Assembly: GCA_965240325.2 (NCBI GenBank)
Contig: OZ251243.1
Span: forward strand, 806,001-870,000
Length of the DNA: 64,000 nt
Direction: 5' to 3'
Source: Rebecca billardiae RCC1528
Taxonomy: Eukaryota; Protista; Haptophyta
Shown: positions 11,580-37,152 of the stretch, piece after piece
How positions within the stretch are numbered: the stretch's first letter is position 1
How the letters are laid out: each line of letters opens with the position of its first letter
Notes under the pieces: model-generated
What the model was told of the DNA's origin: nothing
What the model saw: only the letters and a program-made list of their open reading frames with translations
Databases searched by the model: none
Position numbers and translations under genes: made by a program

Positions 11580-14500
11580 TCATTCGCGCCGCCTGCGCTT
11601 GGGCGAGGGCGACGCGGCCGACTGCCGCGCCGCCGGCTCGCTGTCCACGCCACCGCCAACGGCGGACGCGGCCAGCGCACTGCACCGCGCGCCGTCCTCG
11701 CAGCCAATGGCACCGTTCGCGGCGCCGCTTGCTCCGAGCGCGCGCTGGGGCCCATCCGCCGGTTCGAGCTTCGAGCTGTCCGGGAGTGCGCCGCGCGCCG
11801 GGCTGCCGCCGGGCGGTTGCGCGCGCACGCACCCCTCCGGCACGCGGCTGTGGGGGCGAGGGGACGGCGGCGCGCGGGCGCACGCGAGTGAGGGCCGCGC
11901 GGCCGCGCGCAGTCCGCGCACGCGCCACGGCGCGGCGAGAAGCGCAGCGCCGGCGCGCGGCGCGCACGTGTGCACGGCGCCGTCCCCGAGCATCAGGTCG
12001 TACGAGCCATCGGCGTGCACGTCGGCGACGACGGCGGCCAGCCTGCGCGCGGCGCGCGCGCGGCCGGAGGCTCAATGCGCGCAGCACGCGCGCGCGCGCA
12101 CGGCGCGCGGCGGGCTCGCCGCGCGCGCGCGCACGGCGCGGCGCGCGCACCAGTCTGTGCCACGCTCGCCCCCGTGTGTCGAGCGCTCCGAGCCGCTGGC
12201 GCCGGCAGCAGCAGCGGCGGCGGGCGCGTGCGCGGGCGGGCGGACGCGCACCTGCTGCCCTCGGGCGAACGAGGGCAGCAGCCGCCAGCGCGCGCTTCGC
12301 AAGTCGAGCTGAGTCGGCGCGCCGCCGGCCGCGTCGGCCGCGTCCGCGCCGGCTGCCATGACCACATGCCGGCCCGTGCGCGCGTTCGAGCGAACGACGG
12401 TGGCGGTGCACCAGCGCGGCTCGGGCACGTCGGTGCCGGTACCCGACGCGCCCGGCGGCGGCGCCGGCGCGGCGGGCGGCGGCAGCTCGTGGCCCGGCCG
12501 CAGCAGCACCTGAATCGAGCGCCCTTCAAGCCTCTGGTGAGCGCCCAGTGGTGGCGGCGAGTGCGCAGCTCCGGGCGCGGCGGCCGGCGCCGCACCGCCC
12601 TCGTCCGCGCTCGAGCTGAGCTCGGCGCCCGCGTCGTGCGCGCCGCCGTCCGCGCGGCTCGCGCGCCGGCCGGCCGCGGCGACGCGGCGCGTGCTCAGCA
12701 CAATGCGCAGCGGGTGGCTCAGGTCGGGCGTGGCGCGTGCGCCGCCGCCGCCGCCGCCGCCCTTGCGCGCAGGCCGTGAGCGCGCGGCGCGCGGCGCGAC
12801 GGCCCCCGTGCTACGCGCGCGCGCGGGCAGGGCGAGCGACGCGCCGGCGGCGGCGGCGCCTCCGTGCGCGGCGTCGGCCGCGCGGTGTGCGCCGCCACTC
12901 TCGCCGCCGCCCGCGGGCTCGAGCGGCGCGCCGTCCGCGGGCGGCGCGCCGTGCTGCGCGCGGAGCTGCACCAATCGGCTCGCGTACGCACCCTGTGCCT
13001 TAGCGACGAGCGAGGTCGACGCGGTGAGTAGCCCGTCCGCCGAGGCCCACGCGCGGGAGTTGACGTCGTTGTACTTGAGCGCGTTCCGGCAGATCAGGCA
13101 CAGGTCGGCGACGAAGTCGGCGAACGACGAGTACGCGCGGCGCGCGAGCTTGGACGCCATCGTGCCGAAGTCCATCGGCTGCGAGATCGCGATCTCGTAC
13201 CCGGGCAGCCCTCGCGGCCGAGTCTGAAAGAAGCCATTGAGGTCGAGCGCACGCACGCGCGGCAGCAGCTCGGCGAGGCACGCGTGCAGCAGCTCGGCCT
13301 CCGCCACCCGGAGCGCGGCCGAGGGCGCGGAGGTCTCGGCAGCCGCGGCGGTGGCGACGCCGCCGCCGCCGCCGCCGCCATCGCCGCCGCCGCCGCCGCC
13401 GCCGTCGCCGAGCGCGGCCGAGGTCGCGCCGCCGCCGTCCGCGCGTCCCGGCTCGTCGGAGCCCGCGCCGCCGCCGCCCGCGCCGTCGGCCGCGGGATGG
13501 GCGGGCGCGGCGGGCGCGCCACTCGCCACCCCGACGCCACCGCCGCGCGGCGAGACGCCCATGCCGCCGCCATCGGCGAGCGACGGCGCGCCGCCCGCCA
13601 GCAGCGACGCGTGCACGCGCGCCCACGTGCGACCGTCCGGCGCGCGGCCCGTCACCACCGCCGACAGCAGCGAATGGAGCGCGTCCGCGTCCACCTCCAT
13701 CCTGCTGAGCAGCTGCGCGTTGCTCAGCAGCACGTCGCAATCCGCCAGCACCGCCTCCGGCTGCCGGTAGTACCCGCTGCGCAGCCGCCGCTGGATGAGC
13801 GGCAGGTCGATCGGAGCGCTCACCGCTCGCCACCAGCTGGCCTCGTCCGCGCGCGCCGGCGCGACGACGACCGCGCGCAGCGCGGGGATGGCCAGCGCGG
13901 CCTCGACGCGCGCGCGCGCCGCGTCGAGCTCGGCCTGCCGCGCGCGCGCGAGCGCGCGCGCCGCGCACAGCGGCGCGAGCAGCTCAGACGCCTCCGCCGC
14001 GGCCGACGCCGCCACGTCTGGCTCCTCTGAGAAGTCGAGCTCCCAAGGGCTCAGCCACTCGGCGCCGCCCGCGGCGGCGGCGGCGGCGGCCTCGTCGAGC
14101 GCGGAGTACGGCGCGTGCGCCTCGAGCCCGGCGGCGCCCTCGCCCTCCGCCGCCGCGCCCGCGGGCGCGCCGCCCGGCGGCAGCCACGCCACTTGGACCG
14201 CTTCCCACGCGCTGCGCACGTCCGCACGGACCGAGAGGACGTTTCCGGGAAACCACTCGTCGCGCGCGCCGTCGGCGGAGGCGTAGCACACGCGCACGCG
14301 CCGGCCGCGCGGCGCATGCGGCTCCGCCGCGCCGCCGCCGCCGCCGCCGCCCAGCTCCGCACGCAGCCGCGCGAGGTGCACGAGCGAGGTGGCGAACTGG
14401 TCGGCCGGCACCAGAAAGTCCGGGAGTTCGGTCCTGGTGAGCGTAAGCGAGAAGCGATGGCCGTGCAGCGCCGACGCGCCGTCGAGGAGCGCCGCGGCGT

Positions 14501-14882
14501 CGGGCAGCCGCGCGCACTCGAGCTCGACGTTGGCGGAGCGCACGAGCAGCTCGACGTGCGCGCACAGCGCGGGCAGCGCCGCCGCCGCCGACGCCGACGC
14601 CGACGGCGCGCCGCCCGGCGCGAGCGCGCCGGCCGGCGCGGCGGCGCTGCCGTCGTCGAGCGCAGAATATGTGACGCCGACGACGGCGCACGGCAGCGCG
14701 GGCGGCAGCGACGGGTACGTCTGGTACGGCGGCGGCTGCGCGGCGTGGCCCTCGCCCAGCGCGCCGTGCATCGCGTGCAGCTCGTGCCCCTCGCGCAGGT
14801 ACACGAGCACGTCTCCCACCTGCGGTGCGTAGACGCACGCGCGCTGCCGATCTCGCAGCAGCCAACCATCGTCCGCGGCCGT

Positions 14883-14915
<33 letters not shown>

Positions 14916-15689
14916 GTGGCTTTGATGCGCGGCGTGGTGCCGCCGCCGCGTCTCGTCGCGCGACTCCTCCGCGCTCTCGTCGCCCGCCGACGAGCCGTCG
15001 TCCAGCACGGCCGTGCGCGCGCGGCCGCGCAGCCGCGCGCGCGCGCGCGGCGCGCTGCGAGATCGAGTGCGCTCACTGCCACCGAGGCGGTGGCCGCGGC
15101 TGCCGCCCGCGCGCGCGGCGTTTCGCGTGCGCCGGCGCGTGGGCCGCGCGCCAGGCTCCATGTCGCTCTCGCTGCCGTCGTCGTTGAGCGCGTCCGAGCC
15201 CGAGCCGCTGTCGCTGTCGCTGTCGTCCCAGTCCCGCCTGCGGCCGCGGCCGCGGCGCGCGACGCGCGCGCCGCCGCGGCGCGCGGGCCGCGAGCCTCGC
15301 GTGCGCCGCGCGTAGGCGCCGCCGCCGCCGTCGTCCGAGTCCATGTACTCGACCTCGTCGTCGTCGTCGTCGCTCGAGCCCGAGCGCGCGTGCGCGCTGT
15401 AGTCCTCGTCCTTCACGTCGTCGCCGCCCTCCTCCTCCTCCTCCTCCTCCGATGAAGGCACCGCGCGCCGCCGACGCCTCGCGGCCGCGCCGCCGCCGCC
15501 GCCGCCGCCGCCGGCCGCGCGCCGCTGGGTGCGGGCCGGCGGCGGTGCTGGCTCGAGCTGCAGGGCAGCGCCCGCGTGCGGCCCGGCCGGCGCGCCGAGC
15601 TGGGCGATGCCGAAGGGGGCTGGCGGCGCTGCACCAGCGCGCGCCAAGGCGCCCGGCGGCGCGCCACCGTTGCCCGCGCCTCGCGGCCA

Positions 15690-15735
<46 letters not shown>

Positions 15736-15885
15736 GCCGCGGCGTCGGGCTGCGCGGCGGCGCCGCCGGCGGCGGCGTCCAGGGGCGCGTCGCCGAACGA
15801 GGGCCACGCGGGCGGCGCGATCAGCACGAACCCGTCTGGCAGGGCCGCGCCCGCTGCCAGCGGTTGCTGGCCCGGCGGCGGAGCC

Positions 15886-15948
<63 letters not shown>

Positions 15949-18371
15949 GGCGGCGGCGGCGGCGCCGCCGCCGGCTCATGCGGCGGCGGCGGCGGCGGCG
16001 CGGCCGCCGCGGGCGGGCGCGGCCTGCGCCGCCGCGCGAGCGCCGCGCGCTGCCTCGCGCTCGCGCGCTGCACCGCCTCGGGGTGCGCCCGGCCGCTCAG
16101 GTCGACCAGCGGCCCCGGGGCCATCAGGTGCGGCGGCAGCTGCGTGCTCGAATCCAACACGTTGTAACGAGAGTCTCGGACTAGGCCGCTGTAGTCAGTG
16201 GCGAAGAACTGCTGCTCGGGCGCGGCGGCCATGGCCGCGCCCGCGGCGCGCGTGCCCACGATCTGTATCTTCCCCTCCAGGTCGGTCGTGGCGAACAGCG
16301 TGCCGCTCGGGTCGAAGCGGCCGTCGAGCAGCGGCGCCCAGGCGGGCCCTCCGCCAAAGCTGGCGAGGACGCGCGCGCTCAGCGCGTCGATGAGCGAGAC
16401 CTGCCCGCCGTAGCTGCCGCTGACGAGGACGTTGGGGTCGAAGGGGTGCGGCTCGAGCACGTACGTCGGCGTGCGCGCCGTGTCGATGTGCCGCAGCATC
16501 TGCCCCGTGCGCGCGCACCACGTCCGGATCGCCGCACCCAGGCAGTCATTGTTCGAGCGGCGCGCGCGCTCAGATTCCGAGGTGACGATCAGACGGTCGC
16601 TCGCCGTCCACTGCGCCATGTCGACCCAGAGCAGCGGCGGGTTGCGGACGTGCGCGCCGCGCGCCGCGCCGCCGTCGGGCATGCCCCCCGCGCCGCCGCC
16701 GTCGCCGCGCCGCCGCACGGCGAGCACGAGCTCCGCCTGCGCCGCTTCCTTCGGCCGGGCGGACCAGAGCGGCGGCCAGTTGAAAACGCGCGCGGTGCCG
16801 TCTCGAGAGCAGGTGAGAAGCCGGCGCGCGCACGTGCTGAAGGCCATGTGGCCGACCCAGCCCGTGTGCCCCGCGAGCGTGGCGTGCGCGCCCGGCGGCG
16901 CGCGCGCGTGCGCGCCGCGCCGCCGCGCCGGCTGCCGCTTCCTCGCCCCGGCCCGCTCCGTCGATGGCCGCTCCACCGCCGGCCGAGCGATCACGGTGCC
17001 GCCGACGACGAGCAACCCGCCGTCGGCGGCGGCGGGCTTGCGCGACGCGCGCGGCTCGCTCGGCGCGCGGAGCACCCACGCGCGCACGGCGCCGTCGGAG
17101 GACGACGCGACGAGCGCGTCGCCGCACGGCTCGAGCGCGACGCACACGATGTCGCTCGGCGCCGGAGTCGGCAGGCCGTCGGCGCGCGGCGCCGGCGCCG
17201 GCAGCTCGAAGCGAGTCGGAGGCTCGTCGAGCGCCGCGGTGTCGAAGGCGAAGCACACGCCCGCCGAGCAGCCGACGACGAGCGTGTGCGCCGCGCCGGC
17301 GTGGGCGTCCTCCGCCCCGTCCTCCCCGCCCTCGTCGCCCCCGCCGCCACACCCACTCACAGCCGGCGCGCCGGCCAGCACGGCCGCCGCGGCCGGGCTC
17401 GAGAAGAGCAAGCAATTTATCGGCTCGGACTGGCTCAGGAGCGTGCGCACGGGCGCGCCGTCGTCGACGTACCACAGGCGGACGGTGCCGTCGTTCGACG
17501 CCGAGGCGAGCAGCACGTTCGCCGCGTCCACCGCCAGGTCGGTCACCACGCCCTCGTGCCCGCGCATCGTGCGCAGCAGCAAGGCGCTCGACGCACACCA
17601 GGCCTTCACGAGGCGGTCGTCCGCTCCTGTGAACAGTACCGAGCCGGTGCGGTCGAAGAGGAGGCAGTACGCCTCGAGGCGGTGGCCGTGCACGGTCTTG
17701 ACCACCTCGAGCCGCGACGCGTGCACCGCCGACGCCGGACGCACCGAGCGGACCGCGCCGCCGCCGAGCTCGCGCGCACGCAGCTGCTCGTGCGGAGGTG
17801 CGCGCCGCGCCGCATCCATGTCGGCCAGGTCGCCGCGCGGCGCGAGGAGGCGGCGTGAGCGCGGCAGCGGCGCGCGCGAGCGCCACTGCCACAGCGCGCA
17901 CGGCTCAAGGGGAGGCTCCTCCGCCGTGGCGCGCAGCGTGCGCGGCGGCGTGGGCGAGCCGACGCCGGCGCCGACGCCGACGCCGACGCCAGCCAGGCCG
18001 ACCGCGGCTGCGCGCTGCTGCGCGGCCGCGGGCAGCGCGGCGAGCGAGCTGGGCCCGGCGCCGAGCAGCGTCCAGGGCGGGGTGGAGAGCCGTGCCGAGG
18101 GCGGTATCGCCTCGTACGACCGGCGCATCAGCGCCTCGAGCAGCCTTGGGAGCGTGCTGCCGTCGACGTGTGCGTGCGCGGCGCGCACACACGCGTACGA
18201 CGGCGCACGCGACGCGCACGCGACGACGCCACCGACGTGCCCGCCGGGGAGCAGGCGGCGCGCCTCCACGGCGCGGCGCGCCGCGTCAAACGCCTCGGGA
18301 GGCAGGCGATCCTCCAGGAAGCGGAGCGCGAGCAGCACGAGCTCGCCCTCGTCCACCTGCGCGGGCACCAT
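11580..18371 (-). CDS. BRWD/PHIP-like protein: N-terminal ELVLLALRFL segment, WD40 repeats, two bromodomains, Tudor-like C-terminal domains
   Basis: GHRLEAYCLLFDRTG..TGADDRLVKAW, GHEGVVTDLAVD, PEQQFFATDY..L.RD, YAPQVGDVLVYLREGH. Bromodomains PIDLPLIQRRLRSGYYR..D...LLSNA and PMDFGTM..KL...Y....F..D..LI..NA.KYN. Introns 12043-12150 and 11848-11967 restore TDWLAAVVADVHADGSYDL. Ends in NLS-like PKRRRRE. Confidence 0.85.
15888..15947 (-). repeat. (CAG)n poly-glutamine tract of about 20 Q in the BRWD-like gene
   Basis: Pure ctg run on the + strand. Confidence 0.9.
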
Positions 18372-18556
18372 GGCGAGTGGCGAGCGACCACCGGCCTCCC
18401 TTCCGCCGCGCCGGTGCGCAGTGCGCACGCACGCCGGGGCCCCCGTGGGCCCAGCCGGACAGCGCGGACCGGCTTCTCAGACTCCGCGCTTGGGCCCGCT
18501 CGCGGAGGCTGGTCCCGACGGCGGCACGCCCGACGGAGCGCGACGCGGACGTGGCC

Positions 18557-19920: not shown

Positions 19921-20754
19921 ATGGTGCGTGTGCATCGCGGCATCGCCCACTGATGACATCATTGCACTGTCGTGCGCGCTACTCACAGCCAGTGCACCGC
20001 GCGCCGCGCCGGCCGCGTCCGCGCGCAGGCGGCCCGCCCAGCGCTCGATGCGGTCCCCACAGCCGAGCTGCTCGAGGAGCTGCGCCGGAGGCTCGATGAG
20101 CCGGAGCAGAAGCGCATGATCCTGGTCGGCCCGCCCGGCTCAGGCAAGGGCACGCAGGCACCGATCATCAAGGACCGGTTCTGCCTGTGCCACCTGGCCA
20201 CGGGTGACATGCTTCGTGCCGCTGTCGCGGCGGGGACGGAGATGGGCAAGGCGGCAGACAAGGTCATGAAGTCGGGAGGGCTCGTCTCGGATGAGATTGT
20301 GGTCGGCATCATCAAGGATGCGATCGACCAGCCGGAGTGCAAGAACGGCTTCATCCTCGACGGCTTCCCGCGCACGGTCGTGCAGGCGCAGAAGCTCGAC
20401 GCGATGCTCTCGGACAAGGGGCAGACCATCGACAACGTGATCGAGATGAAGATCGACGATGAGCTGCTAGTGTCGCGCATCACCGGCCGGCTCATTCACG
20501 CCGAGAGCGGTCGGAGTTACCACAAGACATTCCGGCCGCCCAAGGTGCCGATGTGCGACGACGAGACGGGCGAGCCGCTGATGCAGCGCGCAGACGACAA
20601 CGAAGAGACGCTGCGCAAGCGCCTCGGCGCCTTTCACAAGCAGACGCAGCCGGTGGTCGACTACTACGCTCAGAAGGGCATCTATGCCAAGATTGACGCG
20701 GCGGAGAAGGCGGACACCGTCAAGAAGGCGATCATGGACATCCTGACCGCCTGA
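19921..20754 (+). CDS. ADK: Adenylate kinase (AK2/ADK type)
   Basis: [33 protein letters not shown] region [22 protein letters not shown] at 19921-19923 is followed by GT..AG intron 19924-20028, in frame with exon 2. Confidence 0.93.
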
Positions 20755-25190: not shown

Positions 25191-26983
25191 CTCGCGATGA
25201 CGCGGTTGCTACCACGGCGACAGACCCGGGAGGTGCGTCCGCTGCGCGTCGTACGCCGTTGGCGCTGCGCTTCCGTCGCATCGGTCACCGTCGACGCCAT
25301 GCAGGCCGGACGTGGGCTTCGGCTGAGGGACCGGACCGCGAGCGAGGACTGAGTCCGGTGCGCGGATTCCGGCGATCGAGTTCAGAAGGCCGCGCCAAAT
25401 CTTGCGTCGCGTGCGATGGCGCTTCCCGCCCGCGAGACACCTCGTGATGAGGGCCTTTCTGCACCGAGCTCGACGCGCGGCGGTGGATCGCGCGAGGCGG
25501 CCATCGTGCGCAGCGTCTGATGCTATGGCCGGTGCGAGCGTTCGACGTGCACGTCGGGCGAGGATCGCCCCAAGTCGCACGATCGTGTCGACGCGCCGAG
25601 CGTACCGCATCAAACGGGTCGATTTGGGCCCCGTTCGACCTGCACGCGAGACGACGAGGGCAGCAATCGCGAATCGGGCGAAAAAACCGTTCGGGAATCC
25701 TCTCACGATGTCCGCGCCGGCGTTGGATTTGGCGCGCGCGGCCCATGCGCTCCGCGCCATGCGGAAGATGTTTTCGGCCGAGCGTCCCCAGTGGGAGCTG
25801 CGAGGGCGCCCGGTAGTGAGCGAAGCGATTTTCTTTTCTTGGCGAGGCGATTTTCCTTTTCCTTTTTCTTTTTCTTATCTTTTTCCCGGGCACTACAAGG
25901 GGCGGACCTACGGCCCGCCATACAGGGTCCCCAACAATTGTTCGGACACTGATTTTTGCTGACTACGGCTGCATACGATCTAACGATGAGATGGGCCAGA
26001 GGCTCACATGAGCGCCATGGACCTTACTCCTCGGATGACGACAGGGTGTGGGTGCAGCGAGCGGCGCGCTCAGCGTGTGGCCAGGGCTGGCTTGGATGTA
26101 CAGCTCAACCGACTAGCTGTTGGCTCTGAACAGGTCCACGGAGCCCCCGCGGGTGGCATGCCTGCTGAAATTCGTATATCTGGCGCACGGTTGCATTTGG
26201 CGGCGGGCGGGTTGGTGCGCGCACTGGTGGGCCTCCAGCCGTTCGCTGCGGGTAGTGGTGCCGACTGTAGCCCTTGCCTGCACGGCCAGAGCCGATCGAT
26301 GGGCTGTGCAGCAGCTACTGTGCAAGAGAGGTGCGCAACTGGTAGGCTGGTCCGATCGGGCCGTATATACTCCTGGTGTAGCGCTACGTCCGGGCTTACC
26401 CAGGGCTGTCGAGCGCATGCCGCATAGTCATCGACCATGCCACGTGATCAATATCTGCGCGGCCTTGAGCGGGCTTGCTGGCTACAGACATGCGCAGAAG
26501 CCACACGCCCACGGCTGCTTCACGGCCCTCACGACCAGCCTTGTGCCGACTGTCCGCATGACCCAGCGGGGTGCTCAACGCGGGCTGCCCGGCTATGCGC
26601 GGTCGCAGACAGACCTAGTGGGGTGCACACGAGCCGAGCTGGCCGCTCCTGACCCCGCGCGAGGCAGCCACAGGCCGTACGCTGCTGAGCTATGCTGCCC
26701 AAAGTGTCCAGTCGTTTATTAATGTTGATGGCGGAGACCCGCCTTAGTATCAGTACATGCAAATAAATTTACAGCTAGCTAGCTATATATATATATATAT
26801 AATACTGGCACGCTCCGAGTCAGTATATAAGCAGCGGCCGCGCCATCTAATGAATTAATGACGCGATGATATGATCTGCTATAAAAGGCGCGCCCAATAA
26901 CGCCGAGCCACTGAGTACTGGTCAAGACGGACAAGGGCGGGCTACTCGTCTTCAGCAGACATCCGAGCCGCCGCTCAGTCTCA

Positions 26984-29900
26984 TCAGATCTCCGTGGCGA
27001 TGCCGTTTGCGATGGCCTTGTCGTGCTCGATCGCCTGCCGTATCCGTGGTAGGTAGGAGCGCACGACCTCGTTGAACCTCGACACGATCGCGATCTCGAC
27101 CGAGTGCACGATGCGCGCCTTGTCCTCCTCGCGGCTCGAGCGCGCGTACATGACGGCGAACGCGTCAAAGGACGCGATCACCCTGTCGCGCGCCGCCGCG
27201 TCGAACGCAACCGGCACCACCTCCACGTCGTCGAGCGTGCCGCCCAGGCTGAGCCACGTGTACAGTTCGCACACCGTCCACAGCCTGTCCGCGACCGTCG
27301 GCCCGGCGAGCAGCAGCAGCCGCCGGCACTTGGCGAGGTACACGACCATGTGGTGCAGGTGCTCGTGCGGCGAGAGTGACGGGTCGGCGCACATCGCGTC
27401 GAGCCACACGACGGGCAGCCTGCCGTGCGCCTCCGCCCAGCGCTGCGCCCACGCGCCCAGCGCGGCCTGCTTGTCCGACGGGCTGTCGTGCCATGAGTGC
27501 ACGAGGTAGAAGTCGACGTCGCTCCCCACGCCAACCGCGCCGATCGCCATGCTGTCGCTGAGCGCACGCGTCATCATTGAGCTGGGCATCCGGCTGTCGC
27601 GCCGGCCGAGGCCGTTGGCGGCCGCGCCGCCGGCGCCGCCGTGGGCGTTGCCCAGCGAGGCGCTCCCGTGCGCAACCGCCTTTCGCCGCTTGGTGGCGGC
27701 GGCGGCGGCGGCGGCGGCCGTCACGGCGCCCGGCTTGCCGGGCTCGCGCCCGGCGCCGCCCCAGCGGCGGAACGGCCCGCCGCGCCCGTGCTGCGACGTC
27801 GCCTTCCCCTTGTCCGCCGCGCGCCTGCCCTGGCCGATCAGGTAGAGCAGCTCCTCGTTCACCGGCGCGCCCACGAACACGATCAACGCGACGCGAATCA
27901 GCTCGGGGACCTCCGCCTCGTCCTTGGTGCCGAAGCCGATGAGCGGCGCGATCGGCGCGAGCGAGCCGTCGCCACCAGGCACGGTGACCATCTTGGCGAA
28001 GAGGGCGCGCGCGCTCAGGTGCATGTGCGGCCAGAGCAGGAGGCCACCCCAGAGGGATTTGTACACGGATCGAACGACCGTCGTGACGGCGACCGCCGTG
28101 CCGCGCTCGCCCGTCACCCAGCCGTTGAGAGAGCGCCGGAGCAGCACGACGATCGCCTCGCAGACCGTGCCGAAGCCGAGCGTCTGCAGCAGCGCGAGCA
28201 TCAGCGGCCGCACGCGCAGTCTGTAGATCCAAAGCGCGCGCGCGAGGAACACCGCGCACAGCCAGCGCGCAGCGCCGTACAGCACCTGCTCCCATAGGCG
28301 GTTGGACGCCTGCGCCGCGCCCGGCTGCGCCACCTCCACCAGGAACTCGATCAGGTACCCGAGGTTGAAGACGATGACGGCGAAGACGGTAAGCCGGACG
28401 TGTGGCAGGAAGGGTTGCGTCGGCTGCAGCGCGAGCGCGACCAGCGTCACCCCCGGCGTGAAGAGCATCGACGCGCCGTCCGTGCGCACGATCCCGAGGT
28501 CGGACGTCGTCGGGTCAGCCGGGCCGCCCGTCACGGCGCTCCAGTCTCTGTCCACCAGGAAGAGACCGAGCGCGCCCGCGGTGAGCAGCACGCCGCAGAG
28601 CGCGGTGGGCAGCGAGTACCGGCGCTGCCCTTTGCGCGCCTGCGCGAGCGCCGCCTCGAGCACCTTCTGCAGGTGCGCCGTGGGCAGCGGCTGCCCGGGC
28701 GCGCGCAGCACGCCGGTGATGGCGACGCTCTCAACCGCGCCGCCCGCGCCGCTCGAGATCGGCGCGACCGCGCTCAGGCTGTCGTCCAGCGTTCGCAGCC
28801 CGGGCCTGAGCGCGCCGCGGCCGTCCGCGGCGGCCGCGAGCGGCGCGCCGCCCGTGCGCGGCACGGGCAGGTGCCCGCCCGCATCGGCCGCCGCCGCCCC
28901 ACTCGCGCCGCGCGGCGCCACGCGCGCCGGGCCGCCCAGCCCCATGTTCCCAAGCCTGTCGCGGACGCGGCCCTCAGGCGAGGCGAGCCCGCGCGGGCCG
29001 GGCCCGCCGCTGCCACCCAGCCCGACCATGCTGTATGTCTCCTTGGTCGCGAGCGCCACCTCGTGGAACGTGTCCCGCAGCAGCTTGAGCACGTGCCGCA
29101 CGTCGATCGCGTGCTCCGAGCCCAAGAAGAGCGAGTGCTTCACGTGGTTCCGCACGTACACGGCCGAGCCTCCGCGCTCAAACAGGTGGTGCGTCAGCGG
29201 CAGCGCGGACATGAGCGCGAGCACGTCGTACGGCGTGACGTAGCCGTTGAGGTACGGGATGATGTTCTCCGACGCGCCGAGCTGCTCGTAGTTGTTCGCC
29301 TCGAACTCCTCCTGCTCCACGCCGCAGAACGTCTGGAAGTACCACTGCTTGGTGCAGCGCGCCGGCAGCCTCCCCTCGCACAGCTTCAGCCACAGCCCCT
29401 CCAACCCGAGGAACTGCGCGTCGGCAAGGTAGGTCATGATCGGGCAGTTGGTGCGCACGGCGAAGCTCTTGGCGAGCTGCATCGGCAGCATCGGCACCGC
29501 GTTGCGCGAGAGCACCGTCAGCGGCACCCCCCGGTCGAAGCAGAACGAGTAGACGTACGCGGCGCCCGCGCGGTCAAACTCATTGTTCACGGACGTGTCC
29601 GGCCGCCACTCGCCGTCGCTGCCGCGCTCAAGGCCGCCCATCACGACGACCTCGCGCGCCTTGGCGATGAAGAGCTCGGCGTTCGCCTGCATCAGGTCCG
29701 CCACGTCGCGCAGCGACGAGATGCACACGAACGTGATCCCCTGCTTGGGCGCGCTCCGCAGCACGCGCAGCAGCAGCGAGTGTCCGTCCTCCAGCCGCGT
29801 GCGCTGCACGTCCGCAAAGCCGCGCAGCTGGTACTCGTGCGGCTGTGCGGTGTACGGCTTGCCCTGGCTGCCGATGCCGACGGGGATCTCGCGCGTGCCG

Positions 29901-30424
29901 ATGCCATCGAGCAGGCACCGCGCGAGCCGCGCGCGCATGTCCGGCTGCTGCCCGCCTGGCGCGGCGCGCGCGACGCGCGGCGCGCACAGCCGGCCGCAGG
30001 GGCAGCCTCAGCGCCGCGCGCCTCCCGCGGCGCGCACGAGCGGGAGCAGCGTGCGAGGCGCGCGCGAGCGCCTGGGTGGCGTGCGTGCGTGCTCACCATT
30101 CGTCACAACCGCGTGCAGCACCACGTCGCCCTGCTTGTGCAGCACGCCAGCAATGAGCAGTGCTGCAGTGGGCAGAAGCGCGCGCGGCACAGCATCGAGG
30201 GCGCGCGCGCGCGTGCCGCAAGCGGCGGAGCGGATCAGCACGCGGCTGAGGATGCGCGCACGGCAATGCGCCGTGCGCCGCGCGAGCGATCGACGCACGC
30301 GCCAGCCCTCCAGCCACGCACCCTTGATGTCGTCCGGGTCCGGCCCCGGATCGGTCGTGATCACGATTCCAAACGGCTCGCGCTTCTGCAGCCCGAAGCG
30401 GGCGAGGAGCTTTTCCTTCACCAT
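26984..30424 (-). CDS. Nucleoside-hydrolase-like domain + ~6 TM + C-terminal TIR/HET-like domain fusion (~1046 aa, 3 exons)
   Basis: Exons 30424-30322, 30162-30097 and 29955-26984 join in frame via GT-AG introns. NH motifs IVITTDPGPDPDD, AVVTNGG, EIPVGIG, VVVMGG, NNEFD..A, PYD.L. C-terminal DFYLVHSW..VWLDAMC..LAKCRRLLLLAGPT..DRLWTVCELY. Confidence 0.8.
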
Positions 30425-32085: not shown

Positions 32086-32352
32086 GCTCAAATTTCTGAT
32101 GAGAGCAAGATGAGAGTGCGCGTGTAGTGCCTGACGCGTGCGCAGTCCTTGGCGGTTGCCGTTACGTACGTAGTCCGGTGGGGTCCTGGCCTAATGGCAC
32201 ATTGGTGAGCAACCCTCGCGCGCGCGAAGGCGCGAAGCGATACTGGTACCCGGGAATCTCTCGTGGGCGGACTATCTATGGTTAATATTGGCCCTTGAAG
32301 CTGGGTGCAGGCGGCAAAAACTGGGGGCTGGGGCAGTCAGCAGTCATTCGCG

Positions 32353-35300
32353 ATGCGCGGTGGGCGGGCCCTCGAGCCTCCGCCGGCGCGCACGCCGCGG
32401 CGGAGCAAGCGCGACTCGGCCGCTGGGGCAGAGGGCGGCTCGCGCCATCAGTCGCTTTCCGCTCGCACGCCTCCCACAGTCCTCGCACCCGCCTCCGCGC
32501 CCATCCCCCCGCCCGCGCCATCGCCGCCGCGCCTGCCCATCGACTCCTCTTCGAGGGGCCCGCTCGACTCCTCTACAAGGGCCCCGCTCTCGCCGAAGAA
32601 GCAGGCCACGAAGACGGCGGCGCAGATGCGTCGCGGCACGCATCGGCACGGCACCTTCACCGACCTGTTCGGCGGTGCCGTGCGCCGCATCAGCTCCGGC
32701 GCCCACATGGAGAGCTCCTCGGCGCACAGCGGCCGGACCGGCCGCGGCGCCGCCGCCGAGCCAAAGCGCGACGAGCCGGCGAAGAAGATGGGCATGTTCC
32801 AGGGCGTGATCGTGCCGACGTGCGCGAACATGTGGGGCGTGCTGATCTTCCTGCGCTTCAACAACATCGTCGGGCAGGCCGGCCTCGGCGAGGCGCTCGT
32901 CATCGCCGTGCTCGCGTACACGGCAGCGCTGCTCACGACGCTCTCGCTCTCGGCGATCGCGACGTGCGGCGCGTCCTCGAAGCAGGGCGTGTTCCCGATG
33001 CTCTCGCGCGCGCTCGGGCGCGAGCTCGCCACCGCCATCGCGCTCATGTACTTCCTCGGCATCACCCTCGGCGCCGTCCTCGAGTCGCTCGGCGCGTGCG
33101 AGGTGTGGATTGCTCTGGACCCGTCGTTTGGCGGATTCTTCTGGGATGTGCAGCTCTGGGGCTCGGTGTTCATGGCGGGGCTGGCGCTGCTCGTGCTCGG
33201 GGGCATGCGGCTCGTGTCGCAGCTCGGGATGGGCTTCTTCGTCGTCACGCTGTGCACGCTGCTCGCCTTCTACGTCTCGCTCATCGGCGCGCCCAACCTC
33301 GCGTCGGCCGAGCCGGAGCCCGCGCTCGGCGCGACGACGGCGGGCGCGTCCGCGGGCGCCGAGTACGAGCTGGGGCTGTCGGCGGAGCACCTGAGCGCGA
33401 ACCTGTCGCCGGGGTACACTGAGGGGCAGTCGTTCTCCACCAACCTCGCCCTCTTCTTCCCCGCCTTCACCGGCTTCCTCTCGGGCGCCAACCGCGCGTC
33501 GTCGCTCGCCAACCCGTCAGCGGGCATCCCGTACGGCACTCTGAGCGGGATCACGATCTCGTTCGTCGTGTACACGGCGTACATGCTGCTGTGGGCGGCG
33601 GTGGGCGAGCGCGAGTTCTTGCAGCTGGCGCGGGGCCACCTCGAGGCGCTGATCTGGCCATCCGTCACCGCCGTCCGCATCGGCATCGTCGTCACCTCGC
33701 TCGGGCAGGCGCTGCAGAACTTGGTCGTCGCGCCGCTGCTGCTGCAGTCCGTTGCGCAGGAGGGCGTGCTTCGCGTGCTCAACCCGTTCGCCGTGCGGCA
33801 CAAGGGCGAGCCGAAGCGCGCGCTGGCGGTGGCGTACGTCGTGGGCGCGCTGTGCGTGCTCATCGGCTCGCTCGACCTCGTCGCGCCGCTCCTCTCCATG
33901 TGCTTCCTGCTGTGCTACGCGTCGATGAACCTCACCTGCTTTGTCCTCGACCTCCTCCAGGACCCTTCGTGGCGGCCCAAATGGCGCTACTTCCACTGGA
34001 GCACGGGGCTGGCGGGGTTCGTGCTGTGCGTCGGGCTGATGTTCGCGATCTCGTTCATCTACGCGCTCATCGCGTGGGCGTGCGCCGGCATGATCGTGCT
34101 CTACATCCTCCGCCACTCCGCCGAGACCGACTGGGGCTCGGCGCTCCACGGGCTGCGCTTTAAGCTGGCGATGCGCTCGCTCGCCGCGATCGACATGCAG
34201 GCGCATCTCGAGATCGCGTGGTGCCCGCAGGTGCTGCTCATGTACCAGCTGCAGGTGGACGAGGAGGTGGACGAGGCCGACGCGAACGCGCCGGGGTACG
34301 AGCCCGCCGACCCCAGCATCTGGGGCGGCGTCGGCGGCAGCACCGCCGACGTCGACGGCCGCGACCGGCGCGCCGGCAGCATCGGCGTGGCGAGCGTGGG
34401 CTCGTCGATCGCCGGCCCGGCCGCGGGCGCGATCGGCACGTCGCGGGGCGGGCACACGCACAAGGTGATGATCTCGCTCGCTGACCAGCTGCGCAAGGGC
34501 CAGGGACTCGTCATCGCCGCCGCCATCGTGCCGCTGCTGAAGGACGAGGGCATGAGCGATCCGGATGTGAGCGCACGCGCGCTCGCGCGTCGCGCGCGCG
34601 CGCGCCCGAGTGTGCGGCGCGGCGCGGCTGCGCGGCGCCGCACCGCGCCGCGCCGCGCGCGCACGGCCGGCGGCCGAGCCGTGGGCGTGCTCGCGCGTGC
34701 GCCGCGTGCGCGCGGCGCCGCACGGCGCGAGCCATGCCCTTCGCCACGCGCGCACTCGCGCTGCGCACTCTTGCCCGCGGCCGCGCGCGTGAGGCGTGCG
34801 CGCCGCTCGCGCTCAGCCGCGCCCGTGCGCCCGCCGCCCCGCGCCGCGCGCCCGCTCCGACGAACGCTCGCGCGTCGGCCGCGCGGCGCGCAGCTGATCG
34901 AGTACGCCGAGTCGGAGAAGAAGTACATGGCGCACCTCTTCAAGCGGATCGGGCTGCAGGGCTTCCCCATGACCGTGCTCTCGCGCGACCCGTTTGAAGG
35001 CAAAGCGTATGCGATCCAATGCGCGGGCCTCGGGCCGCTCACGCCCAACACGGTGCTGATGGGGTGGCCGTGGTGGTGGCGCTCGGACGCGCCGACGATC
35101 GTGCCCGCTTTCCTCGAGAGCATCCACCAGTGCACGCGGCTGCACAAGGCCGTGGTGATCGGCAAGAACCTCAACGTGCGCCCGCGCTGCCACCGCGCGC
35201 CCGCGCTGCCACCGCGCGCCCGCGCTGCCACCGCGCGCGCGCGCCGCGCGCCCGCGCGCCCTGCCGCCGCGCTGACTCGCCCTCGCCCTCGCACGCCGCG

Positions 35301-37152
35301 CCGCGCCGCATTTCCGCGCGCGCGCCCACAGCACTTCCCCACGCACGAGTCACTGCCCATGCCCGGCGGGTACATCGACGTCTGGTGGATCCGCCATGAC
35401 GGCGGTCTGCTGCTGCTGCTGTCAAACTTACTCAAGAAGCACAAACTGTGGAGGCGGTGCCACCTGCGGCTCCACCTCGTCACGGACTCGCTCACCGAGC
35501 CCGCGCTGATCCGCGACCGGATGCACAAGCTGCTCACGATGATCAACATCTCGGCGTCGGTGGAGGAGGTGGTGCGCGTGAGCGAGGGCTCGATGCTGCC
35601 CTACATGACGCGGTGCGCGCGCGCACCCGGCCTGGCCGCTCGGAGCCCATTCGGAGGCCGAGGGGAATGATTCAATTTGTTTATTTGTGTCGCCGCGCGC
35701 GCCCGCTCGCGCCGAGAGTGCCCGCGCGGCGCCGAGACACGCGCAGGGAGGGAGCGAGACACGTGCGCACGCGGCCGCGCCCGCTGCGGCGCGCGCGCGA
35801 AAGCACTCAGCGCGCGCCGCCCCCGCCGCCGCGCCGCCCACGCCCCGCCCGCTGCTCATGCAACCAGCAGCGCCGCGGACGGCGGAGACGCGCACGAGGC
35901 GGATGACGAGCTGCTGTGCGCGCCGGACGACAACGCGATGCCCGAGCAGCTGCTGCTCGAGGCGGTGCACGCGGCGGGCGCCACCCGGCGGCACTCGGTC
36001 GCGCCGCCGTCCGGCAGCGCGACCGACATCCGCGCGATGCTGGGTGCGCGCGCCGCGGTGGCGGGCCCAGACGGTCGTCCATCGGTTGCGCGCTCGCCGT
36101 CGATGCCGGGGGCGGACCTGGAGGTCGGCCGCCCCGCGGGCTGCAGGCTCTCGGCCGGCGGCACCGCCGGCCCGGCGCGGCGGCACAGCTTGCGATCCGG
36201 TCGGTACAGCCGCTCGGACTCGGGCCGGCGCGCCGCTGCGGACGTGGGCGGAGGCCACGAGAGCGATGACGAGGACTCCGAACCAGTGCGCCCAGTGCGC
36301 CGTCGCTCCGTCGCAACCGCCGGCGTCGCGGCCAACGTCGGCTCGCGCACCTCCACCGCGCAGACCTCCACGCCCTCGCCGCGCGGCGCGGCGCAGGGCT
36401 CGTCGCTCTCGTCCGCAGCGCCGATGGCGGCGGCTGGCGCGATCGCGCCGTCATTGTCCGCACCGCTGCCCACGACGGCGAGCCCGCACTCGGCGCGGCT
36501 CCAGCGACATGGCACGGACGACGGGACGCGCGCCGGCGCGCCCGGCGCGGATGGCACGGATGCGCCGCCGCCGCCCGCGCCGCCCGTCGAGCCGCCGCCC
36601 TCGCCCGGGCCGCCGGCACCGCCGATGCCGCCGTCGCCGCCGCGCGGCGCAGGCGGAGCGGGCGTGCGCGCGGCGCCAGACGACGGCAGTGCGCACAGCC
36701 GGCCGCGATCTGCGCAGCCCAGCCCGCCGGGCTCGGCGGGGCTGCCGTCGCGTGCGCCGCGCGACCTCCTCAAGTTCGTCACGCGGAACGCGCTCAACCC
36801 GCAGCAGGCGGACGAGCTGTGCAACATCTTCGAGAGCGCCACCGCCAAGTCGGCCGCGGCCGCGGCCGCTGCGGCCGCCGCGGAGGAGGCGCCCGCGGCT
36901 GAGCAGCGCGCGTGGTCGTGGGAGGAGATCCACGAGATTATCGTGCAGCGCTCGCGGCAGTCGCAGCTCGTGCTGATCAACCTGCCCGACCCGCCCGAGG
37001 CCGAGCGCACCGAGTCCACCCTCCACTCCGCCTCGGATATCGAGGACATGGTGCACTACATGGAGTACATGGAGGGGCTGAGCGCCTCGCTGCCGCGCGT
37101 GCTCTTCGTGCACGGCGCGGGGCAGGAGGTCATCCGCTTCGACCTGCTCTGA
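32353..37152 (+). CDS. SLC12/CCC cation-chloride cotransporter
   Basis: KMGMFQGVIVPT..NMWGVLIFLR, TTLSLSAIAT, FFPAFTGFLSGANR, APLLSMCFLLCY, PSWRPKWRYFHW, DWG, IDVWWIRHDGGLLLLL, LVLINLP, LPRVLFVHG.G.EVI. Introns 34567-34893, 35176-35331 and 35613-~35867. Start codon is uncertain. Confidence 0.92.

Follow-up and report, generated by a model that had tools for sequence, protein, structure and literature searches.

We describe a gene of the haptophyte Rebecca billardiae RCC1528 (assembly GCA_965240325.2, contig OZ251243.1), located at positions 26984-30424, on the minus strand, of a stretch of 64,000 nucleotides (positions 806,001 to 870,000 of the contig; here denoted the window). The gene is predicted to encode one protein that combines an N-terminal hydrolase domain resembling the bacterial effectors XopQ and HopQ1, a block of six membrane helices and a C-terminal domain with a TIR fold. 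Because the same layout is carried on single mRNAs of related algae, sequence comparison indicates that the hydrolase-6TM-TIR fusion is real. By analogy with characterised proteins, our leading reading is that the two domains form a membrane-anchored, fused maker and breaker of an ADP-ribose (ADPR)-type signal; we advance it tentatively, as its chemistry would be carried over from those proteins.

A search with the long open reading frame (ORF) of the gene retrieved 20 relatives (P0001-P0020) with E values down to 8e-213, several of them covering 98-100% at similar length. These relatives originate from Diacronema lutheri, Pavlovales sp. CCMP2436, Pavlova gyrans and metagenomes, occur in multiple copies and are filed as hypothetical proteins. 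The Pavlova gyrans relative P0004 corresponds to a transcript marked 'type:complete' with the same layout, and P0005 is encoded by a single ORF of 2988 nucleotides on a transcript contig of 3324 nucleotides that has untranslated ends. In 99 of 162 proteins fetched by iterated search, the membrane block is collinear and joined with the TIR-like domain. The initial annotation of this DNA, which was made from the sequence alone, knew of no characterised protein with this architecture. The proteins we found are uncharacterised, as it held, but the architecture is not unique, since it defines a multi-copy family in Pavlovales.

Gene calls among the relatives are often truncated at the N-terminus, and the fusion is therefore hidden in public models. 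Internal methionine starts (M-x-x-L-P-x-T...) are found within the hydrolase tail of P0030, P0032, P0039, P0046, P0063, P0076, P0100 and P0110. The idea that the hydrolase is just one of many N-terminal modules in the close clade was dropped, because most of the 'hydrolase-less' relatives examined proved to be truncated gene calls.

The predicted gene comprises the following elements:

26984-30424, minus strand: whole gene from start to stop codon, with three exons and a product of 1046 amino acids; relatives match the same layout.
30322-30424, minus strand: exon 1 (103 nucleotides), with the start codon and the motif TDPGPDPDD; donor AAGG/GTGCGT.
30163-30321, minus strand: intron 1 (159 nucleotides, GT..AG), in frame and without a stop codon; relatives have no insertion there, and G+C content is flat across phases.
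30097-30162, minus strand: exon 2 (66 nucleotides), encoding ALLIAGVLHKQGDVVLHAVVTNG; edges CTGCAG/CACTGC and AATG/GTGAGC.
29956-30096, minus strand: intron 2 (141 nucleotides, GT..AG), with a stop codon inside; G+C content is flat across phases.
26984-29955, minus strand: exon 3, acceptor ..GCCAG/.
28682-29035, minus strand: low-complexity Gly/Ala/Pro/Arg linker 1 (ORF residues 302-419), with a G+C content of 0.94 at third codon positions (GC3), 0.83 at first (GC1) and 0.70 at second positions (GC2); the linkers of relatives are of similar length.
27524-27778, minus strand: low-complexity linker 2 (ORF residues 721-805), GC3 0.94.

Joining the exons as read from the DNA gives a coding sequence of 3141 nucleotides, i.e., 1046 codons and a stop; spliced residue numbers equal ORF residue numbers plus 62. 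The raw ORF track of the minus strand holds a 984-codon ORF at 26984-29938 and, upstream of it, a 138-codon ORF at 30008-30424, and it reads across intron 1 because this intron is in frame and free of stops. The 138-codon ORF (minus strand) thus equals exon 1, intron 1 and exon 2 merged by naive calling; gene callers blind to splicing would add 53 spurious residues or lose the N-terminus.

A profile built from the hydrolase domains of relatives aligns with the spliced N-terminus without gaps over both junctions, which constitutes an independent check because the profile rows exclude exons 1 and 2 of this gene. Both introns have a flat G+C content across phases (0.72-0.85). In linker 1, GC3 exceeds GC1 and GC2, and the linker therefore reads as coding. 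Splicing of the gene is thus supported by homology and base composition, and the three exons that had been proposed for the locus were recovered, separated by two GT..AG introns. The genome is GC-rich (0.57-0.80 in this region), and long stop-free frames are common; spurious long ORFs occur in other frames here, and both linkers are of low complexity. These features would allow two adjacent genes, or a retained in-frame intron, to be mistaken for one ORF, an explanation that we find hardly credible given that GC3 stays at 0.93-0.98 over all 984 codons of the exon-3 ORF, linkers included, against the flat introns, and that complete transcripts of relatives show the same three-part layout. Just 3' of the stop codon, at ~26770-26800, the G+C content falls to 47% and a short (TA)n run is followed by CTAG repeats; this flank is probably 3' untranslated region or terminator sequence.

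The N-terminal domain, which spans spliced residues ~13-363, includes the following elements:

29036-29955, minus strand: exon-3 portion of the XopQ/HopQ1-like hydrolase domain.
30329-30355, minus strand: TDPGPDPDD, a non-canonical calcium-binding aspartate motif in exon 1, nearly invariant in relatives.
29633-29644, minus strand: VMGG, a motif in the hydrolase domain.
29573-29587, minus strand: NNEFD, a motif in the hydrolase domain.
29222-29233, minus strand: PYDV, a motif in the hydrolase domain.

Compared with the PDB, the exon-3 part alone matched XopQ structures at E 4e-17, and XopQ entries were the only solved structures matched by single sequences (4e-17 and 1.6e-23). A profile of 17 hydrolase sequences matched XopQ structures over their full length (positions 15-327; E 1.5e-37, 132 bits), whereas the best canonical hydrolase matched the same profile at 7e-10 (41 bits) over positions 21-193, the first half only. 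The NCBIfam model of XopQ likewise ranked top, at 3.7e-21, with RihA at 9e-4 (~1e-3). The score against this model (NF041355) is 75-102 bits, far below its equivalog cut-off of 500, and on sequence similarity the domain is a distant relative of bacterial XopQ rather than an orthologue. The Pfam family PF01156 (IU_nuc_hydro) matched the exon-3 part, which lacks the first 62 residues, at E 5.5e-7 with 30 bits against a cut-off of 34.2; it matched 15 of 21 relatives, down to 5e-11, and a precomputed Pfam domain is given for most relatives.

An alignment of a relative to the XopQ structure 4kl0 places TDPGPDPDD opposite TDPNKDPDD of XopQ. The motif D-P-x-x-D-P-D-D, which replaces the canonical DxDxxxDD, is the hallmark of the HopQ1-like proteins (HLPs), which a 2018 paper set apart as a clan of their own, with one clade that is algal and has a haptophyte among its members (PMC6019455). 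The calcium-site and ribose-site motifs (TDPGPDPDD, NNxFD, PYD) are all present here and nearly invariant in relatives. Judged by these motifs and profile matches, the N-terminal domain is a XopQ/HopQ1-like ribosyl hydrolase with an intact calcium site, and not a canonical IU-nucleoside hydrolase. The nucleoside-hydrolase fold and the motifs named in the initial annotation are thus retained, and the subtype assigned there is replaced.

Several differences set this domain apart from XopQ and HopQ1, with which it shares the nucleoside-hydrolase fold, the modified aspartate motif and homology over the entire domain, its C-terminal half included, which is not shared by canonical hydrolases. Its identity to them is ~25-30%, it is encoded by an endogenous, intron-bearing algal gene and carries no secretion leader, unlike a secreted effector, and six membrane helices connect it to a TIR-like domain.

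XopQ had been an orphan hydrolase-like effector for twenty years before a preprint of 2026. According to this preprint, XopQ proteins convert 2'cADPR, a cyclic ADPR (cADPR) isomer made by TIR domains, to ADPR by hydrolysis of its ribose-ribose O-glycosidic bond; XopQ is reported to be very efficient and fast on 2'cADPR and inactive on 3'cADPR, pRib-AMP, canonical cADPR and nucleosides (bioRxiv 10.64898/2026.06.15.732069). The lack of activity of XopQ/HopQ1 proteins on standard nucleosides is also covered in a review (PMC8910321). We found no mention of eukaryotic homologues or fusions of XopQ in the preprint, and none of a hydrolase-6TM-TIR fusion in either the preprint or the HLP paper (PMC6019455). 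Since the sole activity measured in the XopQ subfamily is cleavage of an O-glycosidic bond in 2'cADPR, with none on nucleosides, the earlier description of the protein as carrying two N-glycosidase domains is probably wrong.

These data bear on the possibility that the two soluble domains have unrelated functions, the hydrolase serving nucleoside or ribosyl salvage at the membrane and the TIR/HET-like domain serving protein interaction or cell death, with no common substrate. The Pfam label IU_nuc_hydro would suit such a division of labour, as would the free-standing copies of this hydrolase type, which exist as complete transcripts. We nevertheless regard it as improbable, as the domain is much closer to XopQ than to canonical hydrolases, published work found XopQ/HopQ1 inactive on standard nucleosides, and the fusion is conserved over several species and many paralogues.

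At the other end of the protein, the following elements were defined:

26987-27523, minus strand: TIR-fold (TIR/HET-like) domain, supported by an AlphaFold2 model, structure searches and profile matches.
27485-27514, minus strand: DFYLVHSWHD, TIR box 1, strand A.
27389-27409, minus strand: VWLDAMC, the W-L-D..C strand-B motif.
27260-27286, minus strand: RLWTVCELY, the WxxxE helix.
27266-27268, minus strand: codon of the alpha-C glutamate, E891 of the ORF (E953 after splicing), at the position of the glutamate of the TIR WC..EL motif.

A word-indexed protein search with the C-terminal 285 residues returned no match. An exhaustive search with the last 190 residues returned 1735 cluster representatives at E <= 1e-3; the look-alike clusters are mostly haptophyte, and one Atlas cluster is auto-named HET. 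An AlphaFold2 model built from an alignment of 70 sequences has a predicted local distance difference test score (pLDDT) of 92.6, with alternating strands and helices. The best 50 Foldseek matches of this model are all TIR (best E 6.3e-4), as are the top 13 in an exhaustive VIA structural search (Z 9.9-7.8). In a second VIA run, 71 chains reached Z >= 8, and the 50 listed are TIR-domain proteins without exception; the best is plant RPP1 (Z 10.6, 145 residues aligned), with RUN1, MyD88, SARM1 and AbTir at Z 9-10. The family profile matched the TIR domains of TLR15 (0.0015) and SIGIRR (0.066) in the PDB at box 1 and the WC..E helix. E891 aligns with the glutamate of WCQYELYF in TLR15 and, in the model, sits in the helix that follows strand C; it would be equivalent to the catalytic glutamate of the plant WC..EL motif. 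The alpha-C glutamate is kept in 54 of 70 family domains (77%).

In this copy, the C-terminal domain matched no Pfam family at E <= 10 and no NCBIfam model. Over 70 relatives, Pfam gave weak matches, namely TIR_2 in 17 (best 6.8e-6), HET in 11 (best 0.036) and TIR in 3 (best 0.0017), and every HET match (PF06985) lies below the gathering score. The three-block pattern h-S-x-W, W-h-D-x-h-C and R-x-W-x-x-x-E, which we take to be that of fungal HET, is shared with this domain. HET matches among relatives, however, are fewer and weaker than those of TIR_2, and TIR is better supported than HET. The initial annotation had recognised a TIR/HET pattern with its glutamate in HSW..WLD..C..RLWTVCEL, a span that corresponds to 27514-27260; motif and glutamate are confirmed, the weak TIR_2 and HET matches in relatives agree with it, and the structure prediction proposed there as a check returned a confident model whose neighbours are TIR domains. 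We conclude, on the basis of the model, that the C-terminal domain is predicted to adopt a TIR fold with the alpha-C glutamate kept.

The domain resembles enzymatic TIRs (plant RPP1, RUN1 and RPS4; SARM1; AbTir; Thoeris ThsB; SPARTA) in its predicted fold (Z 8-10.6 over 115-146 aligned residues), in a box-1-like strand A and in a Trp-x-x-x-Glu helix after strand C with the glutamate. It differs from them in that this copy is too divergent in sequence for the Pfam TIR models, and from typical TIR domains in its strand-B motif W-L-D-x-x-C and its extra C-terminal helices. In the ESM Atlas, the same TIR-like shape (template modelling score, TM, 0.69-0.78 by query) ends haptophyte H-NOX (heme NO-binding) proteins and oomycete TPR proteins. 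These models suggest that the TIR-like domain may be a shared output module with swapped sensor parts.

Between the two soluble domains lies the membrane block:

28034-28681, minus strand: a cytosolic pre-membrane helix and six membrane helices, placed by the AlphaFold2 model and loop charges.
27779-28033, minus strand: a conserved cytosolic juxtamembrane segment past helix 6, with APIAPLIGFG (27929-27958) and two short helices.

The helix cores correspond to ORF residues 443-462, ~485-503, 518-537, 552-571, 581-600 and 616-635. An AlphaFold2 model from an alignment of 46 sequences (pLDDT 89.5) shows helix 1 as the continuation of a long helix that starts in a conserved cytosolic segment; five further membrane helices come next, and short helices follow helix 6. 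In the 46 relatives, Lys+Arg amount to 1.9-3.6, with few acidic residues, in the segment before helix 1, in loops 2-3 and 4-5 and in the segment after helix 6; loops 1-2, 3-4 and 5-6 are net acidic or neutral. Since there are six helices, no signal peptide and loop charges that follow the positive-inside rule, both soluble domains are predicted to be cytosolic (N-in/C-in). About six transmembrane helices had been claimed at 28620-28020, and six were found, spanning 28612-28034; the cytosolic placement of both domains, likewise claimed, agrees with the loop charges.

Searches for the fold of the block yielded nothing at E <= 0.001 with Foldseek against the PDB, unrelated helical proteins with a best Z of 8.1 in the VIA search, and in the Atlas TM <= 0.41 by shape and no usable match by features. 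As none of these searches gave a convincing match, assignment to a named transporter, channel or receptor family was rejected. Conservation within the block gathers on the cytosolic face, at P506, R515, the A-P-L-x-G-x-G motif, A684 and F688; A664, L666, G668, A684 and F688 are conserved at 87-91% in the 46 relatives, and the APLxGxG juxtamembrane motif recurs in many relatives. Charged and buried polar residues within the helices are not conserved. This combination of a conserved cytosolic face and variable helix charges favours a scaffold over a pore; judged by its pattern of conservation, the block is more likely to anchor or cluster the protein than to act as a channel.

Six helices per chain, and a weak, non-significant structural likeness to segments of KCNQ1 and TRPV2, would also be compatible with a nucleotide-gated channel or membrane effector, in which the block forms a pore or disrupts the membrane upon signalling by the domains; TRPM2, in which a fused domain of enzymatic origin mediates gating by ADPR, could serve as a loose analogue. 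The absence of a standout fold match and the variability of charged residues within the helices make this very improbable. The outer loops of 28034-28681 (minus strand) vary much in length among relatives, with loop 3-4 averaging 25 residues as compared with 14 here; such variability would fit diversifying outside-facing surfaces.

How the parts may act together is suggested by analogy. The protein would be a membrane-anchored node of nucleotide signalling derived from nicotinamide adenine dinucleotide (NAD). Clustering, perhaps via the membrane block or the variable outer loops, would start its activity; the clustered TIR domain would cleave NAD+ to yield an ADPR-based signal such as a cyclic ADPR isomer; and the hydrolase fused to it would break this signal at its ribose linkage, as the preprint reports for XopQ and 2'cADPR, and so confine, threshold or end it. 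The fusion on one chain is a hint, independent of the XopQ preprint, that the two domain types act in one pathway. Polypeptides that both make and break a messenger are familiar from GGDEF-EAL proteins (c-di-GMP) and CD38 (cADPR), which are analogous in concept and not homologous. In its most specific form, a self-contained second-messenger node in which a ribose-linked, 2'cADPR-like ADPR signal is produced at the membrane by the TIR domain and destroyed by the XopQ-like domain, the proposal is doubtful, and it too is drawn from analogy.

Membrane TIR proteins that react to infection are known from the same phylum. In Gephyrocapsa huxleyi, virus infection elicits a response of TIR genes that encode several membrane helices, and their products resemble the protein described here in having several N-terminal membrane helices and a cytosolic TIR with the glutamate; unlike it, they are described as having no further domains, and a fusion with a hydrolase is not mentioned (PMC12489294).

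Several observations weigh against a fused maker and breaker. The TIR glutamate is replaced in ~12 of the 42 relatives in which the TIR helix is readable and the hydrolase present at least in part, and strict pairing of the two activities is therefore not family-wide. The top TIR sequence matches are non-enzymatic animal TIRs, and a shared TIR fold, itself predicted, is no proof of NADase activity. The activity of XopQ is known from a preprint on bacterial proteins that are ~25-30% identical to this domain and, because the NCBIfam score is as low as 75 bits against the cut-off of 500, the identity of the substrate is not transferable from XopQ.

The substitutions of the TIR glutamate, to Q, L, V, H, A or P, occur in P0003, P0011, P0018, P0039, P0042, P0046, P0051, P0055, P0059, P0068, P0076 and P0080. 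In P0025 the reverse is seen: its TIR helix is intact and its hydrolase site degenerate (EAGGPDPDS, YSNLLD). Those of the relatives without the glutamate that have a complete hydrolase domain keep its aspartate motifs, and hydrolase motifs are intact in all but one of the relatives with a complete domain. As these motifs stay while the TIR glutamate varies, the hydrolase appears to be the more constrained partner.

This asymmetry, together with the adaptor-type animal TIRs found as closest sequence matches of the TIR profile, is what would be expected of a tethered signal sink, in which the hydrolase alone matters and a non-catalytic TIR-like module docks to the TIR assemblies of other proteins, making the protein a negative regulator. 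We consider such a role unlikely, since this copy and most relatives keep the glutamate and the WxxxE helix, and since the best structural matches include the enzymatic TIRs of plants, SARM1 and AbTir. The protein may alternatively be a nucleotide receptor, whose XopQ-like sensor closes on an ADPR-like ligand and switches on the TIR domain via juxtamembrane elements, relaying or amplifying a signal produced by other sources. On binding ADPR, XopQ closes around it in a large hinge movement (PMC8910321), the conserved cytosolic helices that flank the membrane block could couple both domains, and in related Atlas clusters the TIR-like domain is joined to the sensor-type H-NOX and TPR parts described above. 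However, all Asp/Asn residues that bind calcium and ribose are conserved, as would suit catalysis no less than binding, and very fast enzymatic turnover is reported for XopQ itself; we rate a receptor as decidedly unlikely. The fused maker and breaker remains the leading reading of the protein, in line with the suggestion of the initial annotation that the hydrolase might process TIR products.

The genomic surroundings contain an adenylate kinase gene (19972-20754, plus strand), an SLC12-type cation-chloride cotransporter gene (AA_permease and SLC12; 32305-35670, plus strand) and a gene for a WD40 and double-bromodomain protein (12072-18428, minus strand). These neighbours look housekeeping, which suggests no functional cluster with the fusion gene, and a search of the rest of the 64-kb window revealed no paralogue of the hydrolase, the membrane block or the TIR-like domain. 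A search of viral contigs with the hydrolase profile, by an insensitive method, gave 19 pattern matches, none of which was confirmed; viral counter-defence copies of the hydrolase thus obtained no support.

Each domain type is known, algal HLPs and haptophyte membrane TIRs having both been reported (PMC6019455; PMC12489294), and we found no description of the hydrolase-6TM-TIR architecture in the literature. New here are the exact exon model and the intact motifs in both domains; a confident six-helix model that has no known structural relative, and a family-wide charge test of its predicted topology; and, from the comparison of relatives, the observation that hydrolase motifs stay invariant while the TIR glutamate appears dispensable.

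TIR domains make NAD-derived immune signals in bacteria and plants and, by recent reports, in animals and green algae. How these signals are switched off is much less clear than how they are made. A fusion that several Pavlovales algae retain and that has multiplied into many paralogues is a genome-encoded pointer to one pathway shared by XopQ-type hydrolases and TIR domains, and it raises the questions of which ADPR isomer haptophyte TIRs make, whether eukaryotes possess terminators of their own for such signals and where the XopQ family originated. If the proposed activities are absent, a well-defined but ordinary lineage-specific multidomain family remains. If the protein is a second-messenger node, a eukaryotic alga distant from land plants would natively possess this signalling chemistry together with the enzymatic means to end it, and bacterial XopQ effectors would mimic, or descend from, endogenous signal terminators of their hosts.

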